A stretch of DNA of 64,000 nucleotides, taken from positions 62,001-126,000 of the IMG/VR virus record IMGVR_UViG_3300046092_000062. The stretch is one strand, 5' to 3'. Below are positions 13,130 to 62,259 of this stretch, piece by piece. Numbering within the stretch: position 1 is the stretch's first letter; every line of letters begins with the position of its first letter. The position numbers and the translations under genes were made by a program. The notes under the pieces are model-generated. The model did no database searches. It worked only from the letters and a program-made list of their open reading frames with translations, and was not told where the DNA came from.

Positions 13130-13224
13130 AATTTGGTGATTGTGTGGAGCTAAGGCGATTCGCTGGACTATGAAGCACGACGAGAGCGTTGAACTTGAAA
13201 TAGGTTCAACCACCAGACTAATAT

Positions 13225-14162: not shown

Positions 14163-14169
14163 ATATTGA

Positions 14170-14244: not shown

Positions 14245-14250
14245 ATACAT

Positions 14251-14325
14251 GCCTTGATAGCTCAGGGGTAGAGCGTCTCCTTTACACGGAGAGGGTCCGC
14301 GGTTCGAAACCGTGTCAAGGTACCA
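14251..14325 (+). tRNA. tRNA-Val(TAC)
   Basis: TCTCC-ttTACac-GGAGA arm, CCA. Confidence 0.93.
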
Positions 14326-14333
14326 AAGGAAAT

Positions 14334-14407
14334 GCGGGATTAGTTTAATGGTAAAACGAGATCCTTCCAAGTTCAAGTCAGCGGTTCGATTCCGCTATCC
14401 CGCTCCA
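14334..14407 (+). tRNA. tRNA-Gly(TCC)
   Basis: GCGGGAT/ATCCCGC acceptor, T73-CCA, ctTCCaa loop (weak anticodon stem). Confidence 0.88.
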
Positions 14408-41330: not shown

Positions 41331-42817
41331 TGACTATAGCAAATGTAAATGTAAGACAAATCTTACTTAAAAAGGGCAACACTGCTCGAAGCCAAAACTA
41401 CACCGGTGCAATTGGTGAAATTACCCTAGATACAGATTTAAACAGTATCAGAGTACACAATGGCGTTACAGCAGGCGGCGTTAATATACTTGCGACTCAA
41501 GCGCAAATCAACGCTCTAACATCTAGTATTAGTACTATCACTGGATTAGATGCCAACTTAGTTGCGAACATTAGCTCGTTGCTAGCCAATGCAGCAAGTC
41601 AACAGACCACGATCAATTCTTTACTTGCCAACGCAGCAAGCCAACAAACACAGATTGCTAATATTACCACCGGTACTGCAACCTTTGGAAACTTGTTACC
41701 AAGTGCTAACGTAACATACAGTTTAGGTAGCCCGACACAGCAGTGGAAAGACTTGTACGTTAGCAGCAACACTATCTACATTGCTGGTATCCCGTTGCGA
41801 GTAGACACCAATGGAAATTTAACCATTAACGGCAACAGTGTAAGCGGTGGTCCGAGTGGAACGGTATTGCCGCCGGACGCAAATGGCGTGCTAACTAACC
41901 TCAATGGGGGACTGGCGTGGGGCGATCCTAATAGACTTGGCTATAACGACACCTTAATCTATATGTCGGGGTATGATTCTAATCTTATTTTCCAGCGTGG
42001 ACAAACACGCTACGGTGAAATTAAAGCAGGTCCGGAATTCTTTGGACTAGAAAACAGCGGCGAAATTACCATTAACACCGGCGCCACATGGTCCTTTGCA
42101 CAGGATGGTACATTAACATTCCCTGACAATCTCACAGTTGTTGACAGCGTTATTGGTCGTCGACTAGAAGAAGTTAACGGCGAAGCAGTGGATGCAGTAG
42201 GATCAAAGTTGACATTTACTGATACTGATGTACAAATGGAGGCATACGCCGATCCAGACGGACTTAACAACATAGCTCATGCTCGCTTGTTTGCTAATGC
42301 TACCTCAGCAATTATGGAAGCATCGATTGAAGACGTCGCTGGCGTAACTTTTGGACGAATAACAGTAGCTGGTGGTGGCATAGACATGTCACTAAGTGAT
42401 GGTGTACTCGACAATTCGTGGGACTTTGCTTTAGATGGGACTACATTATTACCCAATGGTGGTCGAGTAGTTTTTGGTGCGCAAAACGGCGATTCGTACA
42501 TCCAAGCAGGGCAAGGCTTCCACATCAGTAGCCGCGAAGGCATTAGTCTTGAAGCAGTGGATGCAACAGATCCAGAGAATCCAGTTACACAAGGATGGTA
42601 CTTTAGTCCAGATAGCAGAATAACATTCCCTGATGGTACAAAGCAAGGTACTGCATACGTCCACAATAATGTCAACTTAGATGGCGGAGGAGCTAGCACA
42701 GTGTACGAAGTAGAAACAGCATACGCAGATGGCGGCTTTGCTAGCATTAGAAGTTTTAGTGAAACGTTTGATGGCAACGAAGGCAACAATTACATATTAG
42801 ATGGTGGTAGAGCATAA
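41330..42817 (+). CDS. tail fibre protein with Mtd-N/hyaluronidase-like N-terminal domain
   Basis: QILLKKG...GEITLDTD...HNGVTAGG; duplicated LLANAASQQT; DGTLTFPD repeats. Confidence 0.75.
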   Translation: MTIANVNVRQILLKKGNTARSQNYTGAIGEITLDTDLNSIRVHNGVTAGGVNILATQAQINALTSSISTITGLDANLVANISSLLANAASQQTTINSLLANAASQQTQIANITTGTATFGNLLPSANVTYSLGSPTQQWKDLYVSSNTIYIAGIPLRVDTNGNLTINGNSVSGGPSGTVLPPDANGVLTNLNGGLAWGDPNRLGYNDTLIYMSGYDSNLIFQRGQTRYGEIKAGPEFFGLENSGEITINTGATWSFAQDGTLTFPDNLTVVDSVIGRRLEEVNGEAVDAVGSKLTFTDTDVQMEAYADPDGLNNIAHARLFANATSAIMEASIEDVAGVTFGRITVAGGGIDMSLSDGVLDNSWDFALDGTTLLPNGGRVVFGAQNGDSYIQAGQGFHISSREGISLEAVDATDPENPVTQGWYFSPDSRITFPDGTKQGTAYVHNNVNLDGGGASTVYEVETAYADGGFASIRSFSETFDGNEGNNYILDGGRA

Positions 42818-43815
42818 TGGCAAATAGAATACAACTACGCAGAGATACAGCAGCTAACTGGGCTAGCGTTAACCCTGTATTAGCAGATGGCGAGCCCGGC
42901 TTAGAGTGGGACACAAACAAGATCAAATACGGCGATGGCATTACTAGCTGGGACGGATTGAGCTATGCTGGCAACGAGGTCACTTACGGTAACGTGCAAG
43001 TTGCAGAATACCTTACTCAATTTGATGGTACCATTAACTTTACATCTAGTCCAGCTGGTATCAGTGGAGCTGGTATTATCAGCACAGAAAGCCTGATTGC
43101 GTCGACTGCAACACTAACTTCGATTGAAAATGAAGTATCACAGGTGGGCACACAAATCACCGGAATTGAAGCATGGGCCGGCGCTGGCGCAGATAACGGC
43201 TTTGTATGGATTGGATCTAATCCCAATTTTGATTCGTTGTTTAACATCGGCGATAGCATTGTTGGTTGGAGTTTTTACCCAGAGGGATCTCCGGAGGCAG
43301 CAGTAACTATTACAGAATACAACCCACCACTTGGTGCTCCTGCCTTGCGCTTTTCTGGAAGTCCTGGTTCGGCACCGTATGTAGCACAAAGTCCAGATTA
43401 TTCGTCTGTACAAAATCCAGTGACAGTAACCGTTGACACTAATAACTGGGTGTTTAATGCAGATGGATCACTAACATTGCCAGCAACGTCTGCTAACGTG
43501 AGCATTGATGCTACTACTAACATTGTGTCCTTGGGCACTAACGATACTATCACATTCAGTGGGTTTAGTGGAGAAATCCTAGTTAACGACTTGTATGATG
43601 GTTACATGTACAAATATCTAGTGGGTAGCGGCAGCGTTTGGTTAATGGGCAGTACAAACACCAATTGGACTCCGGCAAATACTGCGCCAGGAAACAGCGT
43701 AACAGTTGCTGGTTATACGTCAATTGCATTTACTACCGGCGCATACATATTCACTAACTTGGCAGAAGAACGATCATACAGCTTTTATGCCGTTAAGACC
43801 AGAAACGGTGCTTAA
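42817..43815 (+). CDS. tail fibre protein with major tropism determinant N-terminal domain
   Basis: RIQLRRDTAANW...NPVLADGEPGLEWDTNKIKYGDG. Confidence 0.8.
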   Translation: MANRIQLRRDTAANWASVNPVLADGEPGLEWDTNKIKYGDGITSWDGLSYAGNEVTYGNVQVAEYLTQFDGTINFTSSPAGISGAGIISTESLIASTATLTSIENEVSQVGTQITGIEAWAGAGADNGFVWIGSNPNFDSLFNIGDSIVGWSFYPEGSPEAAVTITEYNPPLGAPALRFSGSPGSAPYVAQSPDYSSVQNPVTVTVDTNNWVFNADGSLTLPATSANVSIDATTNIVSLGTNDTITFSGFSGEILVNDLYDGYMYKYLVGSGSVWLMGSTNTNWTPANTAPGNSVTVAGYTSIAFTTGAYIFTNLAEERSYSFYAVKTRNGA

Positions 43816-43847: not shown

Positions 43848-45290
43848 ATGGCCTCAAAGATACAAATTAGACGAGACACAGCGGATAACTGGACTAACAC
43901 AAACCCAGTTTTAGCTCAAGGTGAGCCGGGATTAGAAACAGACACACGTAAGATCAAGTACGGCGACGGCAACTCCTATTGGGTTGACTTATCGTATTCG
44001 GCTGCTGGTGTTGACATCGGCAACGATGGACAAATCACTATCGGCGAAGGTGCAGGTGCCGATGGTACAGGAACAAATGCAATCGCAATCGGTACAGACG
44101 CTGGTGTAAACCAACAGTATGTAGCTATTGCTATCGGTCATGCTGCGGGTAACAATAACCAAGGCGGCCAAGCTATTGCTATCGGTCGTAGTGCAGGTAA
44201 CAATAACCAAGACATGAACGCGATTGCTATCGGTCGATATGCTGGTAATCAAGACCAACAAGAAGAAACTATTGCTATCGGTCGTTATGCTGGTAGAACA
44301 AACCAACGTTTCCACGCTATTGCCATTGGCGCACAAGCTGGCGAATCTGACCAGTACTGGGACGCTATTGCCATTGGTCGCAGTGCAGGTAACAACGGAC
44401 AAGATCATCAAACTATTGCTATCGGACAACGTGCTGGACAAGACTACCAAGCGAGTCAAGCCATTGCTATTGGTGCATACGCAGGCAATGACACCCAAGG
44501 ACAGAACTCTATTGCGATTGGTGCTTATGCAGGGCAGAACAGCCAATACAATAACAGCATTGTGATTAACGCCACTGGCAGCTTACTAGACAGCGACGAT
44601 ACTGGTACGTTTATTGTTAAGCCAGTTCGTAGCACGGCCGATATGACTGGCTTTACCCCAATGGGATACAATGCAGATACTGGCGAAATTGCTGCCAGTG
44701 CCCAGGGTACTATTTTAGCGACTAACACAGTTAGTGGCGGCGAAGGTACTATAATTGGCCGCGCAACTGCAATTAGCTGGAACCCAACTAGCGGGTCCAA
44801 CCTAACTCCTGGTACGTATGATTTTACATTGGAATTCAATGGCGGCCTGTTTTTACGTGCAGACATATCGGAGTCTGGAGACATTGCGCTTAGTATTCTT
44901 GACGGCGGATACGGGCATACTGTTACAAATAACACTGTAATTAATGGTACAACAATCGGTGGATCTAGTCCAGCAAATGATGTAACCGTTACTATCGACG
45001 CAGTAACTGATATTTCAGATTACACTGCATTAGATTTAACCAAATCTATTAACAAGTTGAACGACGGCTACTATACACTAGCAGACGGCACAGAAGGTCA
45101 AATTATGTATTTGGCATCACTTAGCAGCATTACTAACCCATCTAGTGTACGAGTAACGGTGGCCAATGGTCGCGGTAACGGCAGTTCATGGCAAGACGGT
45201 TGGCTATTTCCGTTTAACGGCAGCGGAGTATGCACACTGCTATTTACAGATGGTTCATGGCAGATCGTTAGCGGCGGAATCTGGGATTAA
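43848..45290 (+). CDS. tail fibre with Mtd-N domain and YadA-head-like 14-aa repeats
   Basis: KIQIRRDT...KIKYGDG; about 12 AIAIGxxAGxxxQ repeats. Confidence 0.8.
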   Translation: MASKIQIRRDTADNWTNTNPVLAQGEPGLETDTRKIKYGDGNSYWVDLSYSAAGVDIGNDGQITIGEGAGADGTGTNAIAIGTDAGVNQQYVAIAIGHAAGNNNQGGQAIAIGRSAGNNNQDMNAIAIGRYAGNQDQQEETIAIGRYAGRTNQRFHAIAIGAQAGESDQYWDAIAIGRSAGNNGQDHQTIAIGQRAGQDYQASQAIAIGAYAGNDTQGQNSIAIGAYAGQNSQYNNSIVINATGSLLDSDDTGTFIVKPVRSTADMTGFTPMGYNADTGEIAASAQGTILATNTVSGGEGTIIGRATAISWNPTSGSNLTPGTYDFTLEFNGGLFLRADISESGDIALSILDGGYGHTVTNNTVINGTTIGGSSPANDVTVTIDAVTDISDYTALDLTKSINKLNDGYYTLADGTEGQIMYLASLSSITNPSSVRVTVANGRGNGSSWQDGWLFPFNGSGVCTLLFTDGSWQIVSGGIWD

Positions 45291-47579: not shown

Positions 47580-49019
47580 ATGGCAACAAAAGAATACAGT
47601 ACCGACTTACAAAAGCTATTTTTAGAGATGATGTTACAGGATGCACAAAGTTATGTGCGTGTGGCTAACATTTACAATCCCGAAAACTTTGATCGCAGCA
47701 TTAGATCCGCAGCGGAATTTATTAAGACACACAGTAATGACTTTAAAACATTACCAGGCTACGATCAAATCAAAGCAGTTACAGGCGTAGAGCTAAAAGC
47801 AATTCCCGATGTAGGTGAAGGGCATACTGAATGGTTCTTAACTGAGTTTGAAAACTTTACCAAGCGACAAGAGCTAGAACGTGCGATCCTTAAGGCAGCG
47901 GACATGTTAGAAGCTGGCGACTTTGATCCGGTAGAGAAGCTGATCAAGGATGCAGTGCAGATCAGTTTGCAAAAAGACATGGGTACAGATTACTTTGCTG
48001 ACCCAGCAGGTCGTATTAACAAATATTACAACAGCGGCGGACAAGTAAGTACTGGATGGCCGCAACTGGATCGACTGCTATACGGCGGGTTCTCGCGTGG
48101 TGAACTAAACATCTTTGCAGGTGGATCTGGTTCTGGTAAGTCATTGGTTATGATGAACATTGCACTCAGCTGGTTGCAAGCAGGACTAAGTGGTGTGTAT
48201 GTTACGCTGGAATTGAGCGAAGAACTTACATCATTGCGTACTGATGCTATGCTAACTGGCATGGGCACAAAAGACATCCGCAAGGACATTGATACCACAA
48301 CGCTTAAAGTTAAGCTGGTTAGCAAAAAGTCTGGGCAGTATCGCATCAAGGCATTGCCAGCGCAGAGCAACGTTAACGACATTCGTGCTTACCTAAAGGA
48401 AGTGCAATTACAAACAGGCATCAAAGTTGACTTTGTGATGGTTGACTACCTTGACTTGGTTATGCCTGTGTCAGTTAAAGTTAACCCTAACGACCAGTTT
48501 ATTAAAGACAAGTATGTAGCAGAAGAGTTGCGTAACTTGGCAAAGGAACTAGGTATCTTGTTAGTTACAGCAAGTCAGTTGAACCGCAGTGCCGTTGAAG
48601 AAGTTGAATTTGATCACAGTCACATTGCTGGCGGTATCTCTAAGATTAACACTGCTGACAACGTGTTTGGTATTTTTACTAGTCGTGCTATGAAGGAACG
48701 CGGCAAGTATCAAATCCAGTGTATGAAGTCGCGTAGTTCTACTGGTGTGGGACAAAAGATTGATCTCGAATACAACATCGAAACCATGCGTATTACAGAT
48801 CCGGGCATCGATGAAAGCAGTGGCAATGGTGGTCCACCTAGACTTGCTGGCATTATGAATCAGATCAAGAACAAGCCAGCGGCGTCCGATGATGAAGGGC
48901 CGTCGTCATTTGAACGTGCAACTGGAACGCCTGCGTGGGAACAAGGTCCTAAAGTCACAGGCGAAGTGCAAAGCAATAAGCTAAAGCAGATGCTAGCCGG
49001 GCTTAAGAAGGGTGAATAA
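47580..49019 (+). CDS. dnaB: replicative DnaB/gp41-like helicase
   Basis: GGSGSGKS, LELSE, VDYLDL, ASQLNR, KSR. Confidence 0.9.
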   Translation: MATKEYSTDLQKLFLEMMLQDAQSYVRVANIYNPENFDRSIRSAAEFIKTHSNDFKTLPGYDQIKAVTGVELKAIPDVGEGHTEWFLTEFENFTKRQELERAILKAADMLEAGDFDPVEKLIKDAVQISLQKDMGTDYFADPAGRINKYYNSGGQVSTGWPQLDRLLYGGFSRGELNIFAGGSGSGKSLVMMNIALSWLQAGLSGVYVTLELSEELTSLRTDAMLTGMGTKDIRKDIDTTTLKVKLVSKKSGQYRIKALPAQSNVNDIRAYLKEVQLQTGIKVDFVMVDYLDLVMPVSVKVNPNDQFIKDKYVAEELRNLAKELGILLVTASQLNRSAVEEVEFDHSHIAGGISKINTADNVFGIFTSRAMKERGKYQIQCMKSRSSTGVGQKIDLEYNIETMRITDPGIDESSGNGGPPRLAGIMNQIKNKPAASDDEGPSSFERATGTPAWEQGPKVTGEVQSNKLKQMLAGLKKGE

Positions 49020-50021
49020 GTCGGGCAAGTAATCTGCAATGGAGATATTCTTTAGCAGATCTTGTGTTAAAATTTCGTCAGAAAATCGCCGGAAATCGAG
49101 ATCGTCTTGATCTCGATGTTCTCTAAATAATTTATTGGGATTAGATTTTTTAACATGCTCTGGTAAACAATTTAAATTAAAATATGTAGGAGATGAAACA
49201 AGATTGTGATTGTAGGACAAACCGGCATCGCGAAACCAGCCAACTGTAGCTGAGTGTTGTAGTATGTTAAGATTGCTTATAGTGTAGCTAACAGTTAATT
49301 GGATTCCGAGGTCGCGGTATTGTTGTAAATTTAACAGTAACCGATCCCACGTTAATGGATACCGTATGTACTCAAATGTCGGTCCAATTCCATCTATGCT
49401 CACACAAAAATTCAGTCTACTAAACTTGGATAATATTGCAAGTTGTTCTCTATTCAAATGAATTGACCCATTGGTTACTAGCGATACAAAGCATGAGGTA
49501 TTACCGGAATCGATTAATCTTTGTAACACATCAAAATTCTTTTTCTCATATAGAGGCTCGCCTCCTACAAAAGACAACATTTTTAGATTTTTAAAATCAA
49601 TGTTATTAATTTGACTATCATTGATTTTAATCATTTTTTCTCCGGTATTTTTGAGACTTGCCCACTTTGAACTTGAATGTTCGTTACAGGTAACGCAGGT
49701 TGAGTTGCAGAGATTAGATGTGTATAATTTAACTATCTGTTCAGAGAACACACCATTGGCACAATCATCTTTAACAAACCTTATATCTTTATTGGCATAA
49801 AAATCATATGATGTGTTTTTTATCTGCCTGTCGCTTTGGATTTGTTGATCTTCTAACACCCAACATTTACTACATTCAACAGGTCGTTGGTTCTTTAACA
49901 TTTCCTGTTGTATGGTCTTTATACTTCTATTAGACCTTGCCATTAAACAACATGGGGTATCAAATTTGTTTTTACTGTATTCTGCACCGTAAAACGGCAT
50001 TACGCAAAAGGTATCATTCAT
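48993..50021 (-). CDS. radical SAM protein with twitch/SPASM-like N-terminus
   Basis: CNSTCVTC, FVGGEPL; TAAATA on minus strand at 50026-50031. Confidence 0.85.
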   Translation of the reverse strand: MNDTFCVMPFYGAEYSKNKFDTPCCLMARSNRSIKTIQQEMLKNQRPVECSKCWVLEDQQIQSDRQIKNTSYDFYANKDIRFVKDDCANGVFSEQIVKLYTSNLCNSTCVTCNEHSSSKWASLKNTGEKMIKINDSQINNIDFKNLKMLSFVGGEPLYEKKNFDVLQRLIDSGNTSCFVSLVTNGSIHLNREQLAILSKFSRLNFCVSIDGIGPTFEYIRYPLTWDRLLLNLQQYRDLGIQLTVSYTISNLNILQHSATVGWFRDAGLSYNHNLVSSPTYFNLNCLPEHVKKSNPNKLFREHRDQDDLDFRRFSDEILTQDLLKNISIADYLPDLFTLLKPG

Positions 50022-50079
50022 ACAATATTTAACGGGAAGTAACCTAATCTAAAAATATGTTAACACTAAATATACTAAA

Positions 50080-50343
50080 TTGGAGCAAATCTTGCAAAAA
50101 CGTACTCGTAGTATCCTAGACGAACTTGCTAGTATCGGCGCACAAAAGGACAAGGAAAGCCTTATTGAAAGCCGTGCTAATAATGTGATCGCTAGTGCTA
50201 TCAATTTAGTAAACTATATCAAGGAAAATTATGATGCCGAGACATCTGCTGAACTTGAGCGTAGGCTTCTAAACAGTATCCGTTCGCAGGATCCACAAAA
50301 ATTCACACGTGGTGTACGGAGACTAAGAAACAATGAGAATTAA
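50080..50343 (+). CDS. hypothetical protein
   Basis: 87 aa, TAAATA at 50067. Confidence 0.65.
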   Translation: MEQILQKRTRSILDELASIGAQKDKESLIESRANNVIASAINLVNYIKENYDAETSAELERRLLNSIRSQDPQKFTRGVRRLRNNEN

Positions 50344-52735
50344 CAGCATCCTATCGGAAAATGTAAAAGCGAAGCAAAGATTAATTGAAGATCCAGACTA
50401 CAAGAAATTGTATAATCTTGGTCGTTTGCTTAAAGAAGCAGACCTAACACAAGATCAAGTTAAACAAGCATTTCAGCGTGTAGCTGATGGCGCAGCAGCA
50501 GGTGCAAACACAGAATTCTCTACAGACGACCAAGCAAGCAACCGTACCCTATTAGGTAAAGGCGTTGACGTTGCTGGTAAAGTATCTTCTGCATTTAAAG
50601 ACGTTGGTAACTGGATTGGTAATTCTGGACCAGTTGCCGGCCTAGATGCAATGATTGACCAAGCGCAAAAAGAAATTATGTCAGCAGCAGGCGGTGATGC
50701 AGGCAAAGTACAACAGGCGCTTGATTGGTATCGTGAATTAAGTAAAGTACCGGGCATGGCTCTTGCCATTAAAGCAATCATTGTTGGTCTTGCAGGTCTA
50801 GCAGGATCGGGTCTTGGTCCAGTTGGTATTGCAGCAGGCTTGACATTTGCTAACAAAATGTTGCAAGGTAACAAATTCTCTAGCGCAGTTGGCAGCGCAT
50901 TAGCAACGGGCGGGACTGTTGCAGCTATGCACGTGGCAAAAGACTTATTAGCTGATGCACCAGATGCAGCAACTACAGAGCCGGATGCAGCAGCCGAGCC
51001 AGAAGCAAGCCAAGATTTACAATTACCTGACGCTGATGCAGAAATGAACGCACAAGCAGACGTAGATGCAGCACAGCAATGGCTTGATGCAGATGAAGCA
51101 GGTAAAACCGCAATCGAGCAAGCTACCGGAATGCCAGCAGCACAGTTACAAGATATTGCAGTTGGCAATAGCCTACAACCAACTGGTGCCGGCAGTGTAG
51201 ACATGGGCGGAGTTGATGCAGGCGAAGTAATTCAACACACTGTAACAAAAGGTGAGACACTGAGTCAGATTGCCAAAGCCAATGGTGTATCAGTAGAAGA
51301 ATTACAAGCTGCTAACCCAGAGATCACCGATGTACACAAGATTGCAGTGGGACAAAATATCAATATCCCAGCAGAGACTGGTAGTAATGTTTATGCCAAC
51401 GGGGTTGGCGCAGGTGGACCAACTGCATCTAGCACAATGCCGCAAGCACAAGCAGACGAATTAAGTGGACGAGCATCCAACATAAGCGCAGCACAGCAAG
51501 CCGCAGAGCCAGCAGCCGCGCCAGTTGCAGAACCGTCTACAGATTTTGCACAGCAAGCCCGCAACCAAGTTGAATTAAACAAAATGGTGCAGGACAAAGT
51601 AGATACAGATTACGCAAATCAACAAGGTGCTCAAGGAAACTACGTACCAACTGGTAATGCCTATATTGACCGTTTAAACAGAGCCGCAGCAAACGGTATC
51701 CGTTTGCGTGAAAGCTATATTGATCGTGACATGACTATCCGTATGTGGGTCTTGCGCGAAGGTATGGGCAAACCACGCGGCGGAGTACAGATTACAGAAT
51801 CTGGTCGTAAAGCTATTTTCCGTGCAATCGCTAAAGCAAGTTTAAACGAAGGTGCATTGGATAAGCTAAAGTCGTTTAACCAACAAGCTGGTGCAGCAAT
51901 TGGTAAAGCAACAGCACCACTAAAGCGTATTGCCGCAGCAGGTGCAGACGCAGCAACTAACAATATCACTTACGATAAGCTAGACATGAACTGGCGCCGT
52001 GGTGCAAAGCTAGCAGGTGCCCCAACAGTAAACAGTGAAGACCTAGTTAAGTTCCTAAGAGACCAAGGGGTCAAGGATAACTTAATTAACAGCGTATTTG
52101 CTGACATGAATATCCCGCTTGACAAATCGTCACAGGCTGCAAACGCCACAAAGGGCGGATTCTTATCTAGTTTGCTAAAAGGTGCAGGCGCACAGCAAGC
52201 AGGTCAAGCAGTTGACTCTTACAATGCAGCAAGCACTGGCGGAGCAAAAGCACCACCTGCAGATGCATCTAAGACAGCAGGCGCAGCGATGAACAATCTA
52301 CGTTCGCAATATGCCGCAGCACAACAGCCAGCAGCCACACCTGCTCCGGCAGCAACAGCGCAAGCTACACCTGCTCCTACTGCAACGGCATCAAAGCCAA
52401 CACCAGTTACTGGATCAACTGGATTTGATTATGCGTCAGCAGCTAAGATGGCCGGAATTAAGCCAGCAGCTCCTAAAGCAGCACCAAACTTTGGTCAGCA
52501 AATGGGCGGATATGGTAAGACTACAACTACTGTAAACACAACTCCTACAGTAGCTAAGCCAGTAGCAGCAGCACAGCCAAAGCAACCTAAGGTTGTATCA
52601 GGTGGTGCAACTCCTGCCGAAGTAGACGCTTACAACAAGAAAGTGCAAGCCGCAGCAGCAGCACAACCAGCAATGGCTGAAAGCAAAATTGACATCGCCG
52701 AAACACTATGGCGTAAAATGAAGAGAATCAAATGA
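50333..52735 (+). CDS. large Ala-rich LysM-domain protein, probable internal head/ejection protein
   Basis: HTVTKGETLSQIAKANGVSVEELQAANPEI..IAVGQNINIP LysM; multiple LxE sites. Confidence 0.75.
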   Translation: MRINSILSENVKAKQRLIEDPDYKKLYNLGRLLKEADLTQDQVKQAFQRVADGAAAGANTEFSTDDQASNRTLLGKGVDVAGKVSSAFKDVGNWIGNSGPVAGLDAMIDQAQKEIMSAAGGDAGKVQQALDWYRELSKVPGMALAIKAIIVGLAGLAGSGLGPVGIAAGLTFANKMLQGNKFSSAVGSALATGGTVAAMHVAKDLLADAPDAATTEPDAAAEPEASQDLQLPDADAEMNAQADVDAAQQWLDADEAGKTAIEQATGMPAAQLQDIAVGNSLQPTGAGSVDMGGVDAGEVIQHTVTKGETLSQIAKANGVSVEELQAANPEITDVHKIAVGQNINIPAETGSNVYANGVGAGGPTASSTMPQAQADELSGRASNISAAQQAAEPAAAPVAEPSTDFAQQARNQVELNKMVQDKVDTDYANQQGAQGNYVPTGNAYIDRLNRAAANGIRLRESYIDRDMTIRMWVLREGMGKPRGGVQITESGRKAIFRAIAKASLNEGALDKLKSFNQQAGAAIGKATAPLKRIAAAGADAATNNITYDKLDMNWRRGAKLAGAPTVNSEDLVKFLRDQGVKDNLINSVFADMNIPLDKSSQAANATKGGFLSSLLKGAGAQQAGQAVDSYNAASTGGAKAPPADASKTAGAAMNNLRSQYAAAQQPAATPAPAATAQATPAPTATASKPTPVTGSTGFDYASAAKMAGIKPAAPKAAPNFGQQMGGYGKTTTTVNTTPTVAKPVAAAQPKQPKVVSGGATPAEVDAYNKKVQAAAAAQPAMAESKIDIAETLWRKMKRIK

Positions 52736-53490
52736 TGTATTTGTACGAAGGTGGAAACATTTTTGGGGATGGCGACATTCCTAAGGAAGCAGTGCAGGGC
52801 ATTATTGCCCACGTACAAGCAGACTTACCAACTGGGCTAAAGGCCATTGCCGACATTGGATCGGCAGGTTTTAAAGTATCAGCAGGTGACATGGACTTGT
52901 TTTTAGATGCAGAGACTGTAATGAAGAAGTTTGGTGCAGCGGATGAGAAGGCAGCTAAAGTAGCTCTAGCAGAGTTTATGATGGCCAAAGGTTACAAGGC
53001 CAAAATCTCAGGTCGCAACGTGCATATTGAAGTTCCTTACAAAACTGAAGCCGGCAACCGTGCAGCACAAGTTGACTTAATGGTTATACCAGATGCTACC
53101 CGTGTAGCAGATTGGCACCAGCATGGCCCACGCGGCAGTTACGAAGACCCTAAGTTCAAAGCAGCACAAATCTTTATTTTGTTGAACAGCATTGGTAAGC
53201 ATCTTGGGTTTAAAGTAGATGCGTTTGCTGGCAACGTATTGCGCAGAGACAATAACGAAGTGGTAGCAAACAATAGAGATGCTGCCGCAAAAGTTTTGCT
53301 TAACCCTAAGGCAAAAGCAGCAGATTTAAACAGTGTGGGCACTATTATGGCTGCACTAAAGAACGACCCAGACCGCGAAGGTAAACTAGCACAAGCTAGA
53401 CAGGACCAAGCCAAGGGATTATTAACATTACCCGAAGACGTTGCTCCTGGTACAGCAACGTGGTTTAGAAACATATCAAGCCAATTATGA
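52732..53490 (+). CDS. pol-beta superfamily nucleotidyltransferase-like protein
   Basis: IGSAG...GDMDL and distal QVDLM. Confidence 0.68.
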   Translation: MMYLYEGGNIFGDGDIPKEAVQGIIAHVQADLPTGLKAIADIGSAGFKVSAGDMDLFLDAETVMKKFGAADEKAAKVALAEFMMAKGYKAKISGRNVHIEVPYKTEAGNRAAQVDLMVIPDATRVADWHQHGPRGSYEDPKFKAAQIFILLNSIGKHLGFKVDAFAGNVLRRDNNEVVANNRDAAAKVLLNPKAKAADLNSVGTIMAALKNDPDREGKLAQARQDQAKGLLTLPEDVAPGTATWFRNISSQL

Positions 53491-54503
53491 AAATTTTTGA
53501 AATTCTAAGAGAAGGTGGTTGGGACACTACCTTAACACAAAACACAGTTCTACATCCTAGAATCGTCGCTCCTGCATTGGCAGTAGTTGACAAGTTTGTT
53601 ATGGACTTTAACCGCTGGCTAGAGCCTAAGGGATTGGGTCCTGTACGCAGAGGCCGCCCTACAGGTAGTAGCGCACATCACGAAGCAGACGCAGCAGAAC
53701 AACCAGACAAAGTCTACGGAGACATTGACTTGCAAATGATTGGCCCTGAGTTTGAAGGTGCAACATTTGCACAGTTTACAGGCAACTGGAACAAGCTAGC
53801 AGATCAGTTTGTTAAAGAAGGTCATGCTCCTTATGTGGACACAAGCGAAAGCAAACCTGGTCACCCTATTTTCCAAATTGGCGCAAACGATTACGTACAG
53901 ATTGACTTTATGTGGCATCCTGAGCGTTTAGAGCAATGGGGTGCAGCCCGTGTTACTCCTGAGCGCGGCGTTAAGGGTTTGCTAACTGGCAACATGTTTA
54001 GTGTGCTAGGCGAGCTATTGGACATCAGTATCCAACATGCAGGTGTGCAGCTAAAGGTTATTGACAATCAGCACGTTCCGTTTAGTAAACAAAAAGGCAC
54101 ACAAGTTGTTACTATTACAACTAACCCCAGCACCTACATCCTGGATCTCTTTAACTACGAAGCCCAGCAACAAGGCGTGCAACCACGCATTGACCCTTTG
54201 CTAAAACAATTTCCAGGCAACGACTTAAACGATGTTAAAATCTCTAAACTAGTTAACGGCGTTAAAGGCTTTGCCCGTAGCGCAGAAGCCAGTGGCATGA
54301 TGGGGCAAGGCGATTTTGCTAACTTTTCTAGCGCACAGGATTTTATACAGCAGTTCTGGCAACGTTACGAAGAAAAGGCCATGATCGATATCGCAGGCAA
54401 AAAGCGTGACAAGGCACAAACACCTGATGCTATTGCTAGGGCAGAACAAGACAGACAAAAGATCCAACAGGGTCTTGACATGGTTAGAGGACTATTCGCA
54501 TAA
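53487..54503 (+). CDS. pol-beta superfamily nucleotidyltransferase-like protein
   Basis: TGSS...YGDIDL and distal QIDFM. Confidence 0.65.
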   Translation: MKIFEILREGGWDTTLTQNTVLHPRIVAPALAVVDKFVMDFNRWLEPKGLGPVRRGRPTGSSAHHEADAAEQPDKVYGDIDLQMIGPEFEGATFAQFTGNWNKLADQFVKEGHAPYVDTSESKPGHPIFQIGANDYVQIDFMWHPERLEQWGAARVTPERGVKGLLTGNMFSVLGELLDISIQHAGVQLKVIDNQHVPFSKQKGTQVVTITTNPSTYILDLFNYEAQQQGVQPRIDPLLKQFPGNDLNDVKISKLVNGVKGFARSAEASGMMGQGDFANFSSAQDFIQQFWQRYEEKAMIDIAGKKRDKAQTPDAIARAEQDRQKIQQGLDMVRGLFA

Positions 54504-55621
54504 TGAAATTCAGCTTTATTAACATGCTGACTGAAGCAGCAGATCCACGTATTCCCCACCCAGAGGATGCTATCTTTGGACCCAATGGTAGTGCAGATGC
54601 TGCACAAGCTCTTGCGGGACTTAGAGGTGCTATTGCCCAAGCTGGTAATATGAGTATTAAATGGGACGGTGGTATTGCATTGTGGTTTGGCCGTAACGAA
54701 CAAGGACAGTTGGTAGTGACTGACAAGTACATGCCAGACAAAGGTGTGCTAGCAACTAGCCCCGAGCAATGGCGTGAATACGATTTACAAAAGAAGTCGG
54801 GAACAACTCGTGATGACTTGTATGCAAAGCTAGCACAAATGTGGCCTGCATTAGATAAAGCAGTTGTTGGTCCAGGATGGTTCTTCGGCGACCTAATGTA
54901 CAGCGAACCATTGACTCCTATCCATGGACGCTTTGTGTTTAAGGGCCCAACAGTTGAGTACCGTGTTCCTATTGAAAGCGAACTAGGACATTTAATTAAC
55001 AGATCTATTGCGGGCATTGTTGTACACGTACAGTCGGATTCCCCCGGCGGTACAAAAACACCTTGGAACGGCAACGGTTTGCGTAATATTCCAGGCGGTG
55101 TGGCTATTATTAACCCTACTTTAGGCATTAAATTTAGCCTCAAGGAGCCTGTGCAGCTTTCTAAAGCAGCAGATGCGGCAATTAAAAAGTGGGGCCCAAC
55201 TGTAGACCAATTCCTTGCTACACAGTCTGGAACAGCAAAAGCTCTGCTACAGCAATTCTTTAACAAGCGTATTACTAACCAGCCCGAAGGCAGGGATCTT
55301 GTTGAGTTCTTGAAAGCAAAAGCTAGCGGAAAGCAGTTTCAAATCCTAGTAGGCGATCAGGAAACTCCTGGTGCGTTGTATGCACAAAATGCAGAAGGTG
55401 GCCTAGATGAAAGTCCGGGATACACAGGGCTTAAAGCAATATGGAACGCAATCTATGCGTTTAAAGTTAACCTAAGTCAACAGCTTGAAACTCAAGTTAA
55501 GGGACTAGAACAGTTTAGTGGTGGCCAACCCGGCGGCGAAGGATTTGTATTTCCGAGCCCAAATGGCCTGGTTAAAATTGTAAATCGTGGGCAGTTCGGC
55601 GCAGCGCATTTTAACAAGTAA
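54503..55621 (+). CDS. ATP-grasp covalent nucleotidyltransferase (RNA/DNA ligase-like, DUF6267-like)
   Basis: Motif I SIKWDG, motif III-like FFGDLMY, motif IV GEGFV, motif V LVKIV; no OB domain. Confidence 0.68.
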   Translation: MKFSFINMLTEAADPRIPHPEDAIFGPNGSADAAQALAGLRGAIAQAGNMSIKWDGGIALWFGRNEQGQLVVTDKYMPDKGVLATSPEQWREYDLQKKSGTTRDDLYAKLAQMWPALDKAVVGPGWFFGDLMYSEPLTPIHGRFVFKGPTVEYRVPIESELGHLINRSIAGIVVHVQSDSPGGTKTPWNGNGLRNIPGGVAIINPTLGIKFSLKEPVQLSKAADAAIKKWGPTVDQFLATQSGTAKALLQQFFNKRITNQPEGRDLVEFLKAKASGKQFQILVGDQETPGALYAQNAEGGLDESPGYTGLKAIWNAIYAFKVNLSQQLETQVKGLEQFSGGQPGGEGFVFPSPNGLVKIVNRGQFGAAHFNK

Positions 55622-55695: not shown

Positions 55696-56094
55696 ATGGC
55701 ATTAGGACAAGTAAAAGTAAACGGCAAAGCAGCCGCAGGTGCATTCCAAGGTTACCAACCATTGGTTATTAAAATCGCTGACAGCCAATCTGGCTTCACA
55801 GCTACAACAGGTGGTACAAGTCAATCTGCACCATTGGTTGAAGGTGGTTACGACCAAGGTATCCGTGCAGTAGAAACATTGGGTTCTATCGTATGGGCTG
55901 GCGCTCAAACTAACGCATCTTTGTGCGTTATCGTTGACGGTGCTACATTCAACGCAGGCGCAGGTGCAACAACATCTGGTGCTTACGGTGCTTTGAAGGA
56001 TGCAGTTGCATCTGCAACAGGCATGGGTGCTGGTAACTTGACAGTTACTACATCTAGCGTGTTGAACGGCGCTGGTACATTCACATTCGCTTAA
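55696..56094 (+). CDS. small Ala/Gly-rich putative virion protein
   Basis: TAAATA at 55647, strong codon bias, followed by terminator. Confidence 0.65.
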   Translation: MALGQVKVNGKAAAGAFQGYQPLVIKIADSQSGFTATTGGTSQSAPLVEGGYDQGIRAVETLGSIVWAGAQTNASLCVIVDGATFNAGAGATTSGAYGALKDAVASATGMGAGNLTVTTSSVLNGAGTFTFA

Positions 56095-56113: not shown

Positions 56114-56138
56114 AAAAAGGCTCTTAGGAGCCTTTTTT
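56114..56138 (+). terminator. rho-independent terminator
   Basis: AAAAAGGCTC-TTAG-GAGCCTTTTTT. Confidence 0.85.
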
Positions 56139-56174: not shown

Positions 56175-56618
56175 ATGGCCTCAGGCGCATTAAAAGTAAA
56201 CGGCGATGCAACCGCAGTAGTTGCAACAGATATTGATGGTAACACAGACGGCTCGGCCCGCACTGCCACTGGCATCATTGCACCAGGTATGAGTGGCCGC
56301 ATCACTGCATATAAGATCACAGGTGTTGGCGGATATGCTGCAAGCAACTTAACTCTTGAAAGCGGCATTAACCGCACAACAGGTAACGTTGGGTTAGTAT
56401 CACAGATGCTTGGGGTTATTCAGCAACGTAACACAGTTGTAGCATACCAAGTCGAAAGCGGCAGTAATCAACTAAGTGCATTAGTAGAACACAGTGCATG
56501 GACTGACGCAGAATTGCAAGCATACATTCGTGCAAACATTACACAACTTGGTGTATACGGTAACAGCACAGTGTCTAGCGTATCAGTTGCTAGCACAGGC
56601 GGCTTGAAGTTAGCATAA
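56175..56618 (+). CDS. small putative virion protein, similar start to 55696 ORF
   Basis: MASGALKVNG vs MALGQVKVNG; TAAATA at 56149. Confidence 0.65.
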   Translation: MASGALKVNGDATAVVATDIDGNTDGSARTATGIIAPGMSGRITAYKITGVGGYAASNLTLESGINRTTGNVGLVSQMLGVIQQRNTVVAYQVESGSNQLSALVEHSAWTDAELQAYIRANITQLGVYGNSTVSSVSVASTGGLKLA

Positions 56619-56638
56619 GAGTTAACACTTAACAACAG

Positions 56639-56662
56639 AGGCAGTTTTATACTGCCTTTTTT
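56639..56662 (+). terminator. rho-independent terminator
   Basis: AGGCAG-TTTTATA-CTGCCT-TTTTT. Confidence 0.75.
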
Positions 56663-56681: not shown

Positions 56682-57128
56682 ATGAACCGAGAACTACAGT
56701 TTTATACAGGATACACACTAGTGGACATTACTGCCACTGGTGTAACCCGATATAGACCTGAGCAAGAGTTTGAAAGAAATCAGCAACGTAACTGGGAAAC
56801 GGTATTGCAGACAATGGGTCTTAGAACCCAGCCTCTCATGATCAACGGACCGATATGCACAGAAAGTAACCTAGCAGATGGATGGAACTTTGGAGAATAT
56901 TACCGAGGACGCCATAAGATCTGGGTTTGGACCTTTGCAATCGAGCACCAAGACGTTTTCCTAGTGGGAGATAATCCACAAGGTGGCTTAGAAACTGACT
57001 TTGAACAAATTCCTGTCGTAACCGGATTGGCAGAAACAGCTCGTTTTATGTTGCCTATCTTTTATCCGCATGGCGCGATAAAAAATGTGTACTTTAAAAA
57101 CCTGGCAATAGACTTAAATAATATTTAA
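56682..57128 (+). CDS. hypothetical protein
   Basis: TAAATA at 56671; start moved to 56682. Confidence 0.7.
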   Translation: MNRELQFYTGYTLVDITATGVTRYRPEQEFERNQQRNWETVLQTMGLRTQPLMINGPICTESNLADGWNFGEYYRGRHKIWVWTFAIEHQDVFLVGDNPQGGLETDFEQIPVVTGLAETARFMLPIFYPHGAIKNVYFKNLAIDLNNI

Positions 57129-58180: not shown

Positions 58181-58864
58181 ATGAGATTAAACGAAATGGG
58201 CGCTAAGCCAACCGCAAAACAAATGAACAAAGTCATGGAAAGCCGCTTTGGTTTCCAAGTTGACTATGCAAACTTAACCTTCAAGAAGGCTTACACGATG
58301 GCAACTGCTATCAGCGAAAGCCTAAACAAGATTAAGAGTACACACGGCGTTCACACTGCTGAAAAGAATCCATCTTACATGGAAATGCTTATGGTACGTG
58401 AAAGCCTACACAGCTGGATGCGTGACAACAAACAACAGTTGATCAACGAAAGCGAAATGGCCAAGTCTGAAGCTATCTTAGCTGCAAAAGACATGGTTGA
58501 TAGCATCCAAGACATGTTGGAAAAAATCAGCAAAATGCAGAACGAACAGTTACCTGCATTGTTAGACACAATCCGTGACCAAATTGGCATTGAAAAAGCC
58601 GACGGCTTTAAGAGCGCAGTTAGCCCATTGCTAGGCAATTTGGCACAAACACTACAACAAGGTCGCGAAACTGCTGATTCAGCAGCACGTGGCTTAGCCG
58701 GCGAAGACATGGGCCAAGATATGGGCATGGGCGGAGCAGACTTAGGTCCAAGCATGGGCGGTGGTCTTGACGGCGAAATGAGTGATATGGACCAAGGCGC
58801 TGACTTTGGTGCCAGCGATGCAGCAACAGGCGGTACAGCCGACTTAGGCAGAGAAGTACGCTAA
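58181..58864 (+). CDS. putative prohead core/internal head protein
   Basis: MRLNE start, INESE site, acidic Gly/Met-rich tail; TAAATA at 58148. Confidence 0.55.
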   Translation: MRLNEMGAKPTAKQMNKVMESRFGFQVDYANLTFKKAYTMATAISESLNKIKSTHGVHTAEKNPSYMEMLMVRESLHSWMRDNKQQLINESEMAKSEAILAAKDMVDSIQDMLEKISKMQNEQLPALLDTIRDQIGIEKADGFKSAVSPLLGNLAQTLQQGRETADSAARGLAGEDMGQDMGMGGADLGPSMGGGLDGEMSDMDQGADFGASDAATGGTADLGREVR

Positions 58865-59316: not shown

Positions 59317-59709
59317 ATGGCATATTCAGACAAGGTAATTGATCACTATGAGAACCCACGTAATGTGGGTTCTTTTGCGAGTGAGGACAGCGATGTTGGC
59401 ACTGGTATGGTTGGCGCACCCGCTTGTGGTGACGTAATGAAATTACAAATAAAGGTAGACTCGAATGGAATTATCACCGATGCACGTTTTAAGACTTATG
59501 GTTGCGGGAGTGCTATTGCAAGCAGCTCATTGGTTACTGAGTGGGTTAAAGGAAAAAGTCTGTCCGAAGCAGCAAGCATCACAAACAGTGAGATCGCAGG
59601 CGAGCTAGCTCTACCACCAGTTAAAATCCATTGTAGCATCTTAGCTGAGGATGCAATCAAAGCAGCAATTGAAAATTATCGAGCAAAGAATGATTCTAGT
59701 TTACAGTGA
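59317..59709 (+). CDS. iscU: Fe-S cluster assembly scaffold IscU
   Basis: YSDKVIDHYENPRNVG, PACGD, FKTYGCGSAIASSS, LPPVKIHC. Confidence 0.95.
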   Translation: MAYSDKVIDHYENPRNVGSFASEDSDVGTGMVGAPACGDVMKLQIKVDSNGIITDARFKTYGCGSAIASSSLVTEWVKGKSLSEAASITNSEIAGELALPPVKIHCSILAEDAIKAAIENYRAKNDSSLQ

Positions 59710-60775: not shown

Positions 60776-61505
60776 CAATTCCGGCCCAGGCAGCATGTGC
60801 AGCAGGGCCTGGATGAAACTTGTCATCCATAAAACTTCCCATACTCTTAGCTAATTCGTAGACCCCGTCTTTGGCGTCGTTTGTAAAGATCCAGTTATCA
60901 AACTTGATTTCACGCAACAGGTGCTGAACTTCAGGGAACCCTGTAACACCAAAGTCACCATTGGGGCTGATATTCTTACCATCAGTCCAGTAGTTTACGT
61001 AACTCATAAACTTGTATTTGATGCCCTTGCTCTCTAAGAAGCTTTGTAGCTTGACCATCTCCATCAAGTTGATCATTGCTAAACTCAATTCACTGGATAC
61101 CTTGTACTGCTCATAGAACATCTTGTGCGCAACAGGATTCTTGTACCATGTGCCCATCTGCCCACCGCTAAAGATGTACCCTAGCTTCTGGTTATCCATC
61201 CTGCGATAAAACCCATAGCTGTCGTATAAGGCATTCCAGTCTGGATCAGTAACGTCGGTTAGGAAATCTAGTCTGCTTACACCACTCCACATAACCAAGA
61301 CTTGGTCATACGCACCGGGATTCTCTAAGACCTTGTGTATAACGCTGTCTGCGATGTATTGGTTACCAGCCGCTGCTTCTGCAATGGTAGTAATCTCTAG
61401 TTCTGGATTGATTTCGTTTAGGTAACGGGGCCAACACGTATTGAGTCCGCCCGGTGTCTCGGGCCATTGGGTAAAGCTACACCCACTTATAAGTAATTTC
61501 ATCAA
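60753..61505 (-). CDS. SGNH/GDSL-like hydrolase
   Basis: SGCSFT, AGNQ, distal FHPG. Confidence 0.62.
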   Translation of the reverse strand: MMKLLISGCSFTQWPETPGGLNTCWPRYLNEINPELEITTIAEAAAGNQYIADSVIHKVLENPGAYDQVLVMWSGVSRLDFLTDVTDPDWNALYDSYGFYRRMDNQKLGYIFSGGQMGTWYKNPVAHKMFYEQYKVSSELSLAMINLMEMVKLQSFLESKGIKYKFMSYVNYWTDGKNISPNGDFGVTGFPEVQHLLREIKFDNWIFTNDAKDGVYELAKSMGSFMDDKFHPGPAAHAAWAGIVNQRLLS

Positions 61506-61513
61506 AATATTTA

Positions 61514-61542
61514 TTGACTATGAGGGCACCAGTTGCTATAAT
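61514..61542 (+). promoter_or_regulatory. sigma70 promoter
   Basis: TTGACT-17-TATAAT. Confidence 0.72.
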
Positions 61543-61548
61543 TACAAT

Positions 61549-62259
61549 ATGTTAACATCACCATATGAATATTCACCATTAAGCAGAGAAACACTAGAAG
61601 GCAAACGTCACTATTGTTTACCCGACGGCAGCAAAGTACCCTCTGTTACCACTATCCTAGACCGTACCAAGAGCGAGGAAAAGAAAGCAGTCCTTGCTAA
61701 CTGGAAAAAGCGGGTAGGCGAGCAGCAAGCACAAAAGATTGTGACAGAAGCTGCTAACCGCGGCACACGTATGCACAGTTACCTAGAGCAGTACATCTTA
61801 ACAGGTGACATGAAGGAACTGCCCTCTAATCCCTTTGCACAACCCAGCTGGTTTATGGCAGCAGAAGTTATCCTACAAGGACTACAACACGTAGACGAGT
61901 TTTGGGGCACAGAAGTTCCACTTTATTATAGTGGGTTATATGCAGGTACCACTGACTGCATTGGCGTATGGAAGGGCAAGCCTGCTATCCTTGACTTTAA
62001 GCAAACTAACAAGCCCAAGAAACGTGAGTGGATTGATGATTACTTTATTCAGCTAGCAGCATACGCCGCAGCACACAATCACACTCACGGCACAGAAATC
62101 AACACTGGCGTTATTTTAATGGCTCAACAGCCAACTACATTGCCCAATGGCGAACTAGACAAGCCGGTTTATACCGAATATGTAATCGAAGGCGATGAGT
62201 TTGCACATTGGGACAAAGAGTGGATGAAACGTGTAGAGATGTATTACCTGTCTAGCTAA
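61549..62259 (+). CDS. PD-(D/E)xK exonuclease (Cas4/lambda-exo-like)
   Basis: PSVTTIL, RGTRMH, EVPL, GTTD, ILDFKQT, QLAAYA; start moved to 61549. Confidence 0.85.
   Translation: MLTSPYEYSPLSRETLEGKRHYCLPDGSKVPSVTTILDRTKSEEKKAVLANWKKRVGEQQAQKIVTEAANRGTRMHSYLEQYILTGDMKELPSNPFAQPSWFMAAEVILQGLQHVDEFWGTEVPLYYSGLYAGTTDCIGVWKGKPAILDFKQTNKPKKREWIDDYFIQLAAYAAAHNHTHGTEINTGVILMAQQPTTLPNGELDKPVYTEYVIEGDEFAHWDKEWMKRVEMYYLSS

Follow-up and report, generated by a model that had tools for sequence, protein, structure and literature searches.

Candidate end-extension and sealing module in a freshwater giant phage: Pol X-like nucleotidyltransferases coupled to an OB-less, ligase-like DUF6267 protein

A window of 64,000 nucleotides from a freshwater giant phage, part of the 320,767-bp IMG/VR contig IMGVR_UViG_3300046092_000062, carries an operon in which two nucleotidyltransferase genes (A and B) are directly followed by a gene of the family DUF6267 (C). 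A and B have the motifs of the DNA polymerase β (pol-β) fold, and C resembles a polynucleotide ligase without an OB domain. We propose, with somewhat less than even confidence, that the three proteins form a coupled module that extends polynucleotide ends and then seals them. The conserved unit is A-C; B is limited to a subclade. The three genes are as follows.

52732-53490, plus strand: A, pol-β-fold (Pol X-like) nucleotidyltransferase of 252 amino acids (aa), from its open reading frame (ORF), motifs, and homologues
53487-54503, plus strand: B, larger, distant paralogue of A and likewise a pol-β-fold nucleotidyltransferase, 338 aa, from motifs and an AlphaFold2 (AF2) model
54503-55621, plus strand: C, OB-less ligase-like protein of DUF6267, 372 aa, from Pfam PF19782, motifs, and an AF2 model

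An earlier note on this DNA had described three translationally coupled genes and quoted their N-termini. Both statements agree with the ORF translations, and every junction overlaps (ATGA between the upstream LysM gene and A and again between A and B, TAATG between B and C). A, B, and C are not chance ORFs, because metagenomic homologues of conserved length are numerous (461 for A, 656 for B, and 414 for C, on contigs of up to ~366 kb) and because contigs spanning the operon occur in three freshwater metatranscriptomes.

Motifs and fold of A and B

Catalytic-type residues are conserved in all three protein families. In A they are G43-S44, D53-M-D55, and Q113-V-D115, and in B they are G60-S61, D79-I-D81, and Q138-I-D140, so that the hG[GS] motif, the [DE]h[DE]h motif, and the third carboxylate, as seen in the earlier note, are all present in both. 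Alignments of homologues (59, 49, and 51 sequences for A, B, and C, respectively) show no variation at the motif residues, and G43, D53, D55, Q113, and D115 of A are still invariant in a much more diverse alignment.

The AF2 model of B (predicted local distance difference test score, pLDDT, of 87.5; residues 1-12 disordered) matches the palm-thumb region of Pol λ, Pol β, and TdT in Foldseek (prob 1.0, E from 8e-4), with target template modeling (TM) scores of up to 0.51 and cGAS as a second-tier match (prob 0.72-0.82). Atlas models of relatives of A resemble the palm-thumb region of giant-virus Pol X (TM 0.55-0.58) and also PF01909 domains. In profile alignments by hhalign, a narrow A profile did not match B, but a diverse A profile did (A5 versus A3, E 1e-4 over 142 columns), with the EGG, GS, DxD, QxDFM, and KG motifs all in register. 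By these profiles, A and B are distant paralogues. The invariant motifs, the model of B, and this paralogy together bear out the view that A and B are pol-β-fold nucleotidyltransferases with intact catalytic triads.

Curated collections place the two proteins less readily. Neither A nor B has a match in PHROGs, NCBIfam, or PADLOC; their profiles gave chance matches only against PDB sequences (phmmer, hmmsearch); and in 50,697 phage records megablast and tblastn found no match to A or B. Within the A family, 1 member in 40 matches the Pfam model DNA_pol_B_palm (E 0.0019), 1 in 40 matches the thumb model (E 0.15), and some members have weak MTPAP-like matches. Some relatives of B have an N-terminal GNAT domain as fusion partner, others a small PF01909 nucleotidyltransferase. 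In one related locus (L007, 7346-8020), a 224-aa protein without a Pfam match is encoded directly ahead of an A-C fusion gene; it starts with MKINEIHLNEGIWDSS, similar to the EGGWDTT of B, and may be a remnant of B or a very divergent B.

C as a ligase-like protein without an OB domain

C matches Pfam DUF6267 over residues 18-371 (E 6.6e-18; 65.7 bits against a gathering cut-off of 27). Its motifs are K53-W-D55-G56, G129-D130-L-M-Y, E346-G-F-V, and K358. In a set of 44 C sequences that are just 21-52% identical and that include cyanophage members, K53, D55, G56, D130, Y153, E346, G347, and K358 are invariant and F146 is nearly so. D130, F146, and Y153 lie on predicted strands and are assigned tentatively, by their order, to motifs III and IIIa. 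The earlier note had pointed to a terminal lysine. The motif part of that claim stands, and the relevant residue is likely K358, at the position of motif V, not K372 at the end of the chain.

In the AF2 model of C (pLDDT 89), residues 1-15 are disordered, and K53, D130, and Y153 lie in an N-terminal α/β half in which motif I sits on a strand-loop. An all-helical insert of ~115 residues (217-330) comes next, and then a C-terminal hairpin (strands 347-352 and 355-359) with E346-G and K358. The chain ends 14 residues past K358 in a single helix and leaves no space for an OB domain, in line with the earlier description of ligase-like motifs without that domain. The motif V Lys follows the motif IV Glu by 12 residues in C, by 13 in the RnlA proteins of T4 and 44RR, and by ~22 in gp30 of 44RR.

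Outside DUF6267, the closest models to C in BFVD are RNA ligases (prob 0.89-0.92), among them the Atu_ph07 RNA ligase (E 1e-3, prob 0.89) and the phiQ1 RNA ligase domain (prob 0.92). Against the PDB, Foldseek ranks Rnl3 and Trl1-LIG first and DNA ligases next, the best ligases having E 0.1-0.3 and prob ≤0.38. C has no match in NCBIfam or PADLOC, and PHROGs places it in a family of unknown function. An hhalign comparison of DUF6267 with T4 RnlA by itself aligned motifs IV-V and was not significant. We call C ligase-like, not a proven ligase, because no PDB match is significant and a profile of RnlA proteins pairs with motifs IV-V alone. On the strength of the model and motifs, C probably belongs to the ligase superfamily, although membership is unproven.

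Linkage and fusion of A and C

The earlier note had treated the triad as a unit. This holds for A and C, and for B in some lineages, since most relatives carry A and C only. Of the related IMG/VR loci, 51 extend far enough upstream to place A: it lies next to C in 25, forms a fusion with C in 14, is followed by B and C in 5, and is absent in 7, so that 44 loci have A beside or fused to C. Among the 1,718 DUF6267 clusters, the 150 best representatives include 32 A-C, 2 C-A, 2 C-B, 1 C-B-A, and 1 C-C-A fusions (the last with a split C followed by A), and 21 of the 120 closest homologues of C are 597-650 aa long, the size of an A-C fusion. That relatives carry A-C, C-A, C-B, and C-B-A fusions argues that these genes work as a unit. 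As the fusions occur in several orders, they point to independent events and thus to a shared pathway or complex.

P0259, the closest of the fusions, is collinear with A and C of the window. Its junction, ...PET-KFSFVKSLNED..., shows that the conserved N-terminal peptide of C (MKFSFINMLTE) is the former fusion linker.

Spread and fusion partners of DUF6267

The phage-specific family DUF6267 is large, with 1,718 clusters at 50% identity, of which 981 have E≤1e-10, and a full-text literature search found nothing on it. In T4-like cyanophages and in Melnitz, the DUF6267 gene follows gp41 and mazG, and an NMNAT-like cytidylyltransferase follows it or is fused to it. The family, as T4-GC 71, is present in 16 of 16 cyanomyoviruses, whereas gp30 and RnlA are present in 10 of 10 non-cyanophage T4-like phages and in 0 of 16 cyanophages (Sullivan et al. 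2010 supplement, PMC3037559). If DUF6267 proteins were ligases, they would fill a long-noted end-joining gap in the ecologically dominant marine T4-like cyanophages. Two cyanophage neighbors, S-PM2d140 and PHM1_160, were considered as homologues of A and B and rejected, as hhalign with the A and B profiles was negative; Pfam finds the cytidylyltransferase domain alone among the cyanophage neighbors of DUF6267.

A Pfam scan of 59 long DUF6267 proteins revealed CTP_transf_like in 7, Acb1 (a 2H phosphoesterase) in 4, and ART-PolyVal, Sigma70_r4, ParB_N, NT5C (HAD), DUF5661, and DUF2608 once each, in architectures such as CTP_transf - DUF6267 - ART-PolyVal - Sigma70_r4 and DUF6267 - ParB_N - CTP_transf - Acb1. 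These multidomain proteins have polyvalent-protein architectures, and the ART, ParB, Acb1-like, and NMNAT-like fusions tie DUF6267 to the early phage-host conflict toolkit. One speculation is that the NMNAT-like partner would regenerate NAD+ for a ligase-like enzyme that depends on it. One DUF6267 protein, P0333, lies on a 358,784-bp contig labeled as a Methanosarcina sp. metagenome-assembled genome, which is probably a jumbo-phage contig binned with the archaeon.

Extension and sealing of polynucleotide ends

For the proposed module we infer what it catalyzes, what it acts on, that its proteins form a complex, and when it acts, as follows. A, and in its clade B, would add nucleotides to a 3′-OH by two-metal catalysis through the three invariant Asp residues. 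C would charge K53 with a nucleoside monophosphate from ATP or NAD+, pass it to a 5′-phosphate, and seal the break. A and C would act as a complex, being one polypeptide in many relatives, and their repeated fusion is what one would expect of enzymes that treat the same substrate one after the other. The 2H/Acb1-like, HAD/NT5C, and NMNAT-like partners of DUF6267 are domains of the end-healing type and count in favor of extension and sealing.

Our best guess for the substrate is gapped or nicked phage nucleic acid. DNA is the favored candidate, at a little under an even chance, because of the likeness of A and B to Pol X, the synteny with the replication module, and the missing gp30. RNA or tRNA is the less probable one, suggested by the RNA-ligase-like fold of C and the healing-type fusion partners.

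Several observations weigh against extension and sealing. On the polymerase side, A and B have no Pfam match at E≤1, the palm and thumb models PF14792 and PF14791 included; the TM-scores of B to Pol X are just 0.3-0.5; and the fold of A is supported indirectly, through an Atlas model of its relatives and its paralogy to B. Both proteins lack the 8-kDa lyase domain and the helix-hairpin-helix fingers of canonical Pol X (the GS motif of A is already reached at residue 43, and B has one long helix ahead of its first core strand), so that they would be at most a palm-thumb minimal form of Pol X. On the ligase side, Foldseek finds no PDB match to C at E≤1e-3, hmmsearch with the C profile finds no link to a ligase among PDB sequences, and a Pfam scan of 51 close homologues of C at E≤10 finds DUF6267 alone and no ligase family. 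Aligned by hhalign with a six-member RnlA profile, DUF6267 matches in the region of motifs IV-V alone (E 0.032, prob 1.6%). To our knowledge, all known DNA ligases have an OB domain. Finally, the A-B-C operon contains no kinase or end-healing enzyme, and the polyvalent-type fusion partners may act independently.

The alternative closest to extension and sealing of DNA is the repair of RNA, which we regard as possible and the less favored of the two. Here C would be an RnlA-like RNA ligase, with A and B restoring 3′ ends in the style of CCA-adding or tailing enzymes. Host anticodon nucleases or other RNase defenses would have cut the tRNAs or mRNAs that are mended, and the large tRNA set of the phage would be protected. 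The nearest folds to C are indeed Rnl3, Trl1-LIG, the Atu_ph07 RNA ligase, and RnlA-like proteins, and C shares with RNA ligases the lack of an OB domain and a motif IV (EG[FY]V) at RnlA-like spacing from motif V. Its family is fused to 2H (Acb1-like) and HAD (NT5C) phosphoesterases that resemble end-healing enzymes, cyanomyoviruses have no RnlA and all have DUF6267, and the A family has weak matches to MTPAP. The window also holds 16 tRNA genes, four of them for tRNA-Lys. Yet B is nearer to family X DNA polymerases than to CCA-adding or poly(A) enzymes, the operon has no polynucleotide kinase or cyclic phosphodiesterase, and the tRNA island is 36 kb distant; a survey of polyvalent proteins saw RNA ligases as not linked to the 2H domains of such proteins (Iyer et al. 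2017, PMC5512222). A link of the triad to tRNA repair, as to nucleotide-signal immunity, is speculative.

The tRNA island itself spans 1-14407, and its four tRNA-Lys genes comprise two with the anticodon CTT and two with TTT. Such redundancy could be useful against host defenses that cut tRNA-Lys.

Operon layout and expression

The operon begins two genes upstream of A, behind a promoter-like motif, and its surroundings include the following features.

50066-50074, plus strand: promoter-like motif CTAAATATA, of the class [ACT]TAAATAT, ahead of the operon
50080-50343, plus strand: first operon gene, an 87-aa protein homologous to PA5oct gp259 (46% identity, E 2e-21), a virion structural protein in RefSeq
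50333-52735, plus strand: 800-aa low-complexity protein with one LysM domain (Pfam) and the N-terminus MRINSILSE
56114-56137, both strands: bidirectional hairpin terminator (10-bp stem, then a T run) 3′ of the gene at 55696-56094
56682-57128: 148-aa homologue of PA5oct gp250 (32% identity, E 3e-8)
58181-58864: 227-aa homologue of PA5oct gp247 (27% identity, E 6e-12)
61441-62259: homologue of the PA5oct exonuclease gp244 (42% identity, E 3e-60)

As the earlier note had seen, a LysM-type protein stands directly upstream of A; its LysM domain covers residues 302-346 of 800 (Pfam E 1e-12). Counterparts in related loci (L003 5163-5906, L005 5604-6221, and L007 6348-7349) are 205-333 aa long and lack LysM but keep an N-terminus of the type MKINEIVVE, so the middle of this protein is highly variable. 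The 87-aa protein has counterparts of 82 aa in L003-L005 and of 69-83 aa in L006-L007.

No terminator-like hairpin is found on the plus strand within 52500-55621, and the first strong hairpins 3′ of the operon are at 56114-56137 and 56637-56659. In two of the metatranscriptomes (X17 and X19), the next gene, at 55696-56094, has 15-40 times the depth of A-B-C, and because of this step we take the signal to come from RNA and not from DNA contamination. In a related strain, one RNA-library contig starts at 50092.

The motif [ACT]TAAATAT occurs at only eight plus-strand sites in the 64 kb (14159, 40810, 43818, 50066, 55646, 56148, 56670, and 58147), all intergenic or at gene edges. Seven of the eight lie just upstream of genes, compared with ~0.75 sites expected near gene starts by chance. 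They precede the operon (50066), the three genes after it, a tail-fiber-like gene (43818), one further gene (40810), the homologue of a PA5oct virion protein (58147), and a tRNA or tRNA cluster (14159). Because the operon and structural genes have this promoter-like motif in common, the operon looks co-regulated with virion genes. The motif resembles the T4 late promoter, TATAAATA, and may be a marker of the late regulon in this phage group. Since the operon appears to be co-regulated with virion genes, the module would come into play late in infection or immediately on entry.

Downstream of the operon, 55696-56094 (MALGQVKVNG...) and 56175-56618 (MASGALKVNG...) encode paralogous small proteins rich in Ala, Gly, and Thr, each with its own promoter-like motif and hairpin terminator; the product of the first is probably an abundant virion protein. 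The tail-fiber-like genes at 42817-43815 and 43848-45290 stand in tandem, with nearly the same N-termini (MANRIQLRRDTAANW and MASKIQIRRDTADNW) and different C-terminal parts, and from this arrangement may be an exchangeable pair of receptor-binding proteins.

The virion-type block and possible packaging

The nearest cultured phages by helicase similarity are PA5oct-like jumbo phages (45% identity). Gene order is kept in relatives of the window: primase, DnaB helicase, a variable insert, a small protein, a variable protein, A, (B), C, and small genes. In this clade, as in PA5oct and T4-like cyanophages, the replicative helicase gene is closely followed by a gene of the C type. The PA5oct protein encoded in the place of C, EST35_0228, has 446 aa and the motifs KIDG ... 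EGYV ... KIV; Foldseek (E 1e-4) and a weak hidden Markov model match relate it to C. Pfam has no match for PA5oct gp255-258.

The earlier note had placed the triad among head proteins. Homology to PA5oct supports a virion-type block, and "head" goes too far, as no capsid gene was identified in the window. The PA5oct proteins gp259, gp250, and gp247 are annotated as structural, two of the three having been detected in virions by mass spectrometry, and 11 of the 13 other genes of the syntenic PA5oct block, which is anchored by the four homologous pairs with gp259, gp250, gp247, and gp244, encode virion proteins identified by electrospray ionization tandem mass spectrometry. EST35_0228 and its neighbor EST35_0229 are not flagged as detected in PA5oct virions.

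A radical SAM gene (48993-50021, minus strand) lies between the helicase and the virion-type block, at a place where relatives have other inserts, such as a hexapeptide transferase gene or plus-strand radical SAM genes. A gene for a NifU-like Fe-S scaffold (59317-59709) lies inside the block, and L003-L007 add Fe-S biosynthesis and radical SAM genes.

We consider it possible, though less likely than not, and compatible with extension and sealing, since it concerns delivery, that A, B, and C, together with the LysM protein, are packed into the capsid by means of N-terminal peptides, cut after [LI]xE by a gp21-type protease, and injected with the DNA for counter-defense or repair at the start of infection. 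The N-termini are conserved, as M[KR]LDF[IL]xxLxE-A in C, M[KR]IxDIIxE-GGWD in B, and M(M)YLYE-GGN in A, and are predicted to be disordered in B and C; starts of the form M[KR][IL]x[DE][IVM][ILV]xE recur in neighboring genes here and in relatives, and a GNAT-B fusion, P0139, retains MKIREVIVE at its own N-terminus. Two points on context go the same way: the operon sits inside a virion-type block whose PA5oct counterparts were mostly detected by mass spectrometry, and it shares its promoter-like motif with tail-fiber and structural genes. PA5oct also encodes a gp21-like prohead protease. Finally, DUF6267 or B is fused to the polyvalent-protein domains ART-PolyVal, ParB_N, 2H, and (with B) GNAT, and polyvalent proteins are predicted to be packaged in capsids and injected (Iyer et al. 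2017, PMC5512222).

The evidence on the other side begins with the peptides themselves. E-G-G-[NW] is a domain motif common to A and B that is kept where the domain is internal, and the peptide of C equals the A-C linker. The leaders proposed in the earlier note are thus conserved, and predicted to be disordered in B and C, but belong in part to the enzyme domains or to a fusion junction. Moreover, [LIVM]xE occurs within the first ~14-16 residues of 14 of 82 crude ORFs and is a weak signal, and no protease gene is seen in the window.

No phage in culture has exactly the proteins of the window; proteomics of distant homologues of C points mildly in the same direction. T4-GC 71 was not detected in virions of S-SM1, S-PM2, or Syn9, whereas T4-GC 190, the cytidylyltransferase, had 25 peptide counts in S-SM1 virions (Sullivan et al. 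2010 supplement, PMC3037559). In S-PM2, DUF6267 and the NMNAT-like cytidylyltransferase form one 591-aa ORF (S-PM2d138; L001 5989-7764), a region that the older annotation in the same supplement (PMC3037559) splits into T4-GC 71 and T4-GC 190. Given this split, the virion-flagged T4-GC 190 may include part of DUF6267 in some phages, and its detection in S-SM1 counts for packaging. Overall, the packaging claimed in the earlier note finds no direct support, with neither the PA5oct counterpart of C nor T4-GC 71 detected in virion proteomes; virion delivery is plausible from gene context and fusions.

If delivery in the virion were true of a DUF6267 and Pol X-like pair, the incoming genome or cleaved RNAs could be repaired before phage gene expression. 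The most far-reaching version, in which DUF6267 is a new clade of OB-less polynucleotide ligases, the "missing" ligase of T4-like cyanophages and many jumbo phages, obligately paired with a Pol X-like enzyme and delivered by the virion in some lineages, seems to us unlikely.

Signaling and morphogenesis

A role in signaling or protein modification is much less probable than nucleic acid repair. A and B would make or modify signaling nucleotides, as CD-NTases do, or AMPylate host proteins, and C would transfer a nucleoside monophosphate to a target other than nucleic acid. The second-tier cGAS match of B would fit such a role, as would the fusion of four DUF6267 proteins to the anti-CBASS (cyclic oligonucleotide-based antiphage signaling system) phosphodiesterase Acb1 and of others to ART and NMNAT-like domains; pol-β nucleotidyltransferases of polyvalent proteins are classed as protein modifiers (Iyer et al. 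2017, PMC5512222). However, the Pol X matches of B are clearly above cGAS, PADLOC has no match for A, B, or C, the order of KxDG, EG, and K in C is typical of polynucleotide ligases, and repeated A-C fusion suits consecutive steps on one substrate. A CD-NTase or CBASS-type function as the primary reading was rejected on the first two of these grounds.

Least probable is that C mainly aids virion assembly, in fiber attachment like T4 gp63, with its ligase chemistry secondary or lost: T4 rnlA is annotated as "RNA ligase and tail fiber protein attachment catalyst," and C lies among virion genes with which it has the promoter-like motif in common, but its catalytic-type residues are invariant in the 44 diverse sequences and its obligate pairing with a catalytically intact nucleotidyltransferase indicates enzymology.

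Comparison with known systems

The A-B-C operon can be compared with four known systems. With T4 RnlA (gp63), Rnl3, and the ligase domain of Trl1, C shares a length of ~370 aa and the lack of an OB domain. Like RnlA and other OB-less RNA ligases, it has KxDG first and then EG[FY]V, with a K-x-[KV] strand 12-13 residues on, and its place among virion-type genes recalls the tail-fiber-attachment role of T4 gp63. Unlike RnlA, to which it has no significant sequence or profile similarity, C has its helical domain (~115 aa) between motifs IIIa and IV and not at the C terminus, has a motif V with a single Lys followed by Arg, and is paired or fused with a Pol X-like nucleotidyltransferase.

In T4 internal proteins and Alt, the N-terminal capsid-targeting sequence is a short peptide that stops at [LI]xE. 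A, B, and C begin with peptides of this form, and MKIFEILRE of B looks like the leader of T4 IPIII, a likeness that we take as a lead. In contrast with those proteins, part of the N-terminal motif of A and B belongs to the enzyme domain, and distant homologues of C went undetected in virions.

The likeness to polyvalent proteins lies in the relatives: those of C are multidomain proteins with ART-PolyVal, ParB_N, 2H, and sigma-70 region 4, and those of B are fused to GNAT or a PF01909 nucleotidyltransferase. In the window, A, B, and C are stand-alone single-domain proteins, unlike polyvalent proteins and unlike the multidomain relatives P0387 and P0507. Solo versions of polyvalent-protein domains are encoded beside virion genes, and the pol-β nucleotidyltransferases among them are minimal, firmicute, ArdC-linked versions; text searches of the same source with ligase and nucleotidyltransferase terms returned no ligase-like or Pol X-like nucleotidyltransferase domain (Iyer et al. 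2017, PMC5512222).

The pairing of a minimal palm-thumb enzyme with a ligase is closest to the Pol X and ligase of giant viruses, and Nucleocytoviricota fusions are among the Atlas structural matches. African swine fever virus Pol X with its ligase is such a giant-virus repair pair. The ligases of those pairs are of the canonical kind, dependent on ATP or NAD and equipped with an OB domain, and their Pol X passes the Pfam models, whereas both partners here fall outside all curated enzyme families. The earlier note knew of no characterized system of this composition, and we likewise found none, the literature search on DUF6267 having been empty. As far as found, the composition is undescribed, and it builds on known Pol X and ligase repair pairs and on OB-less ligases. 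DUF6267, repeatedly paired with or fused to a minimal Pol X-like enzyme, defines with it a compact module that may also serve as a small polymerase-ligase tool.

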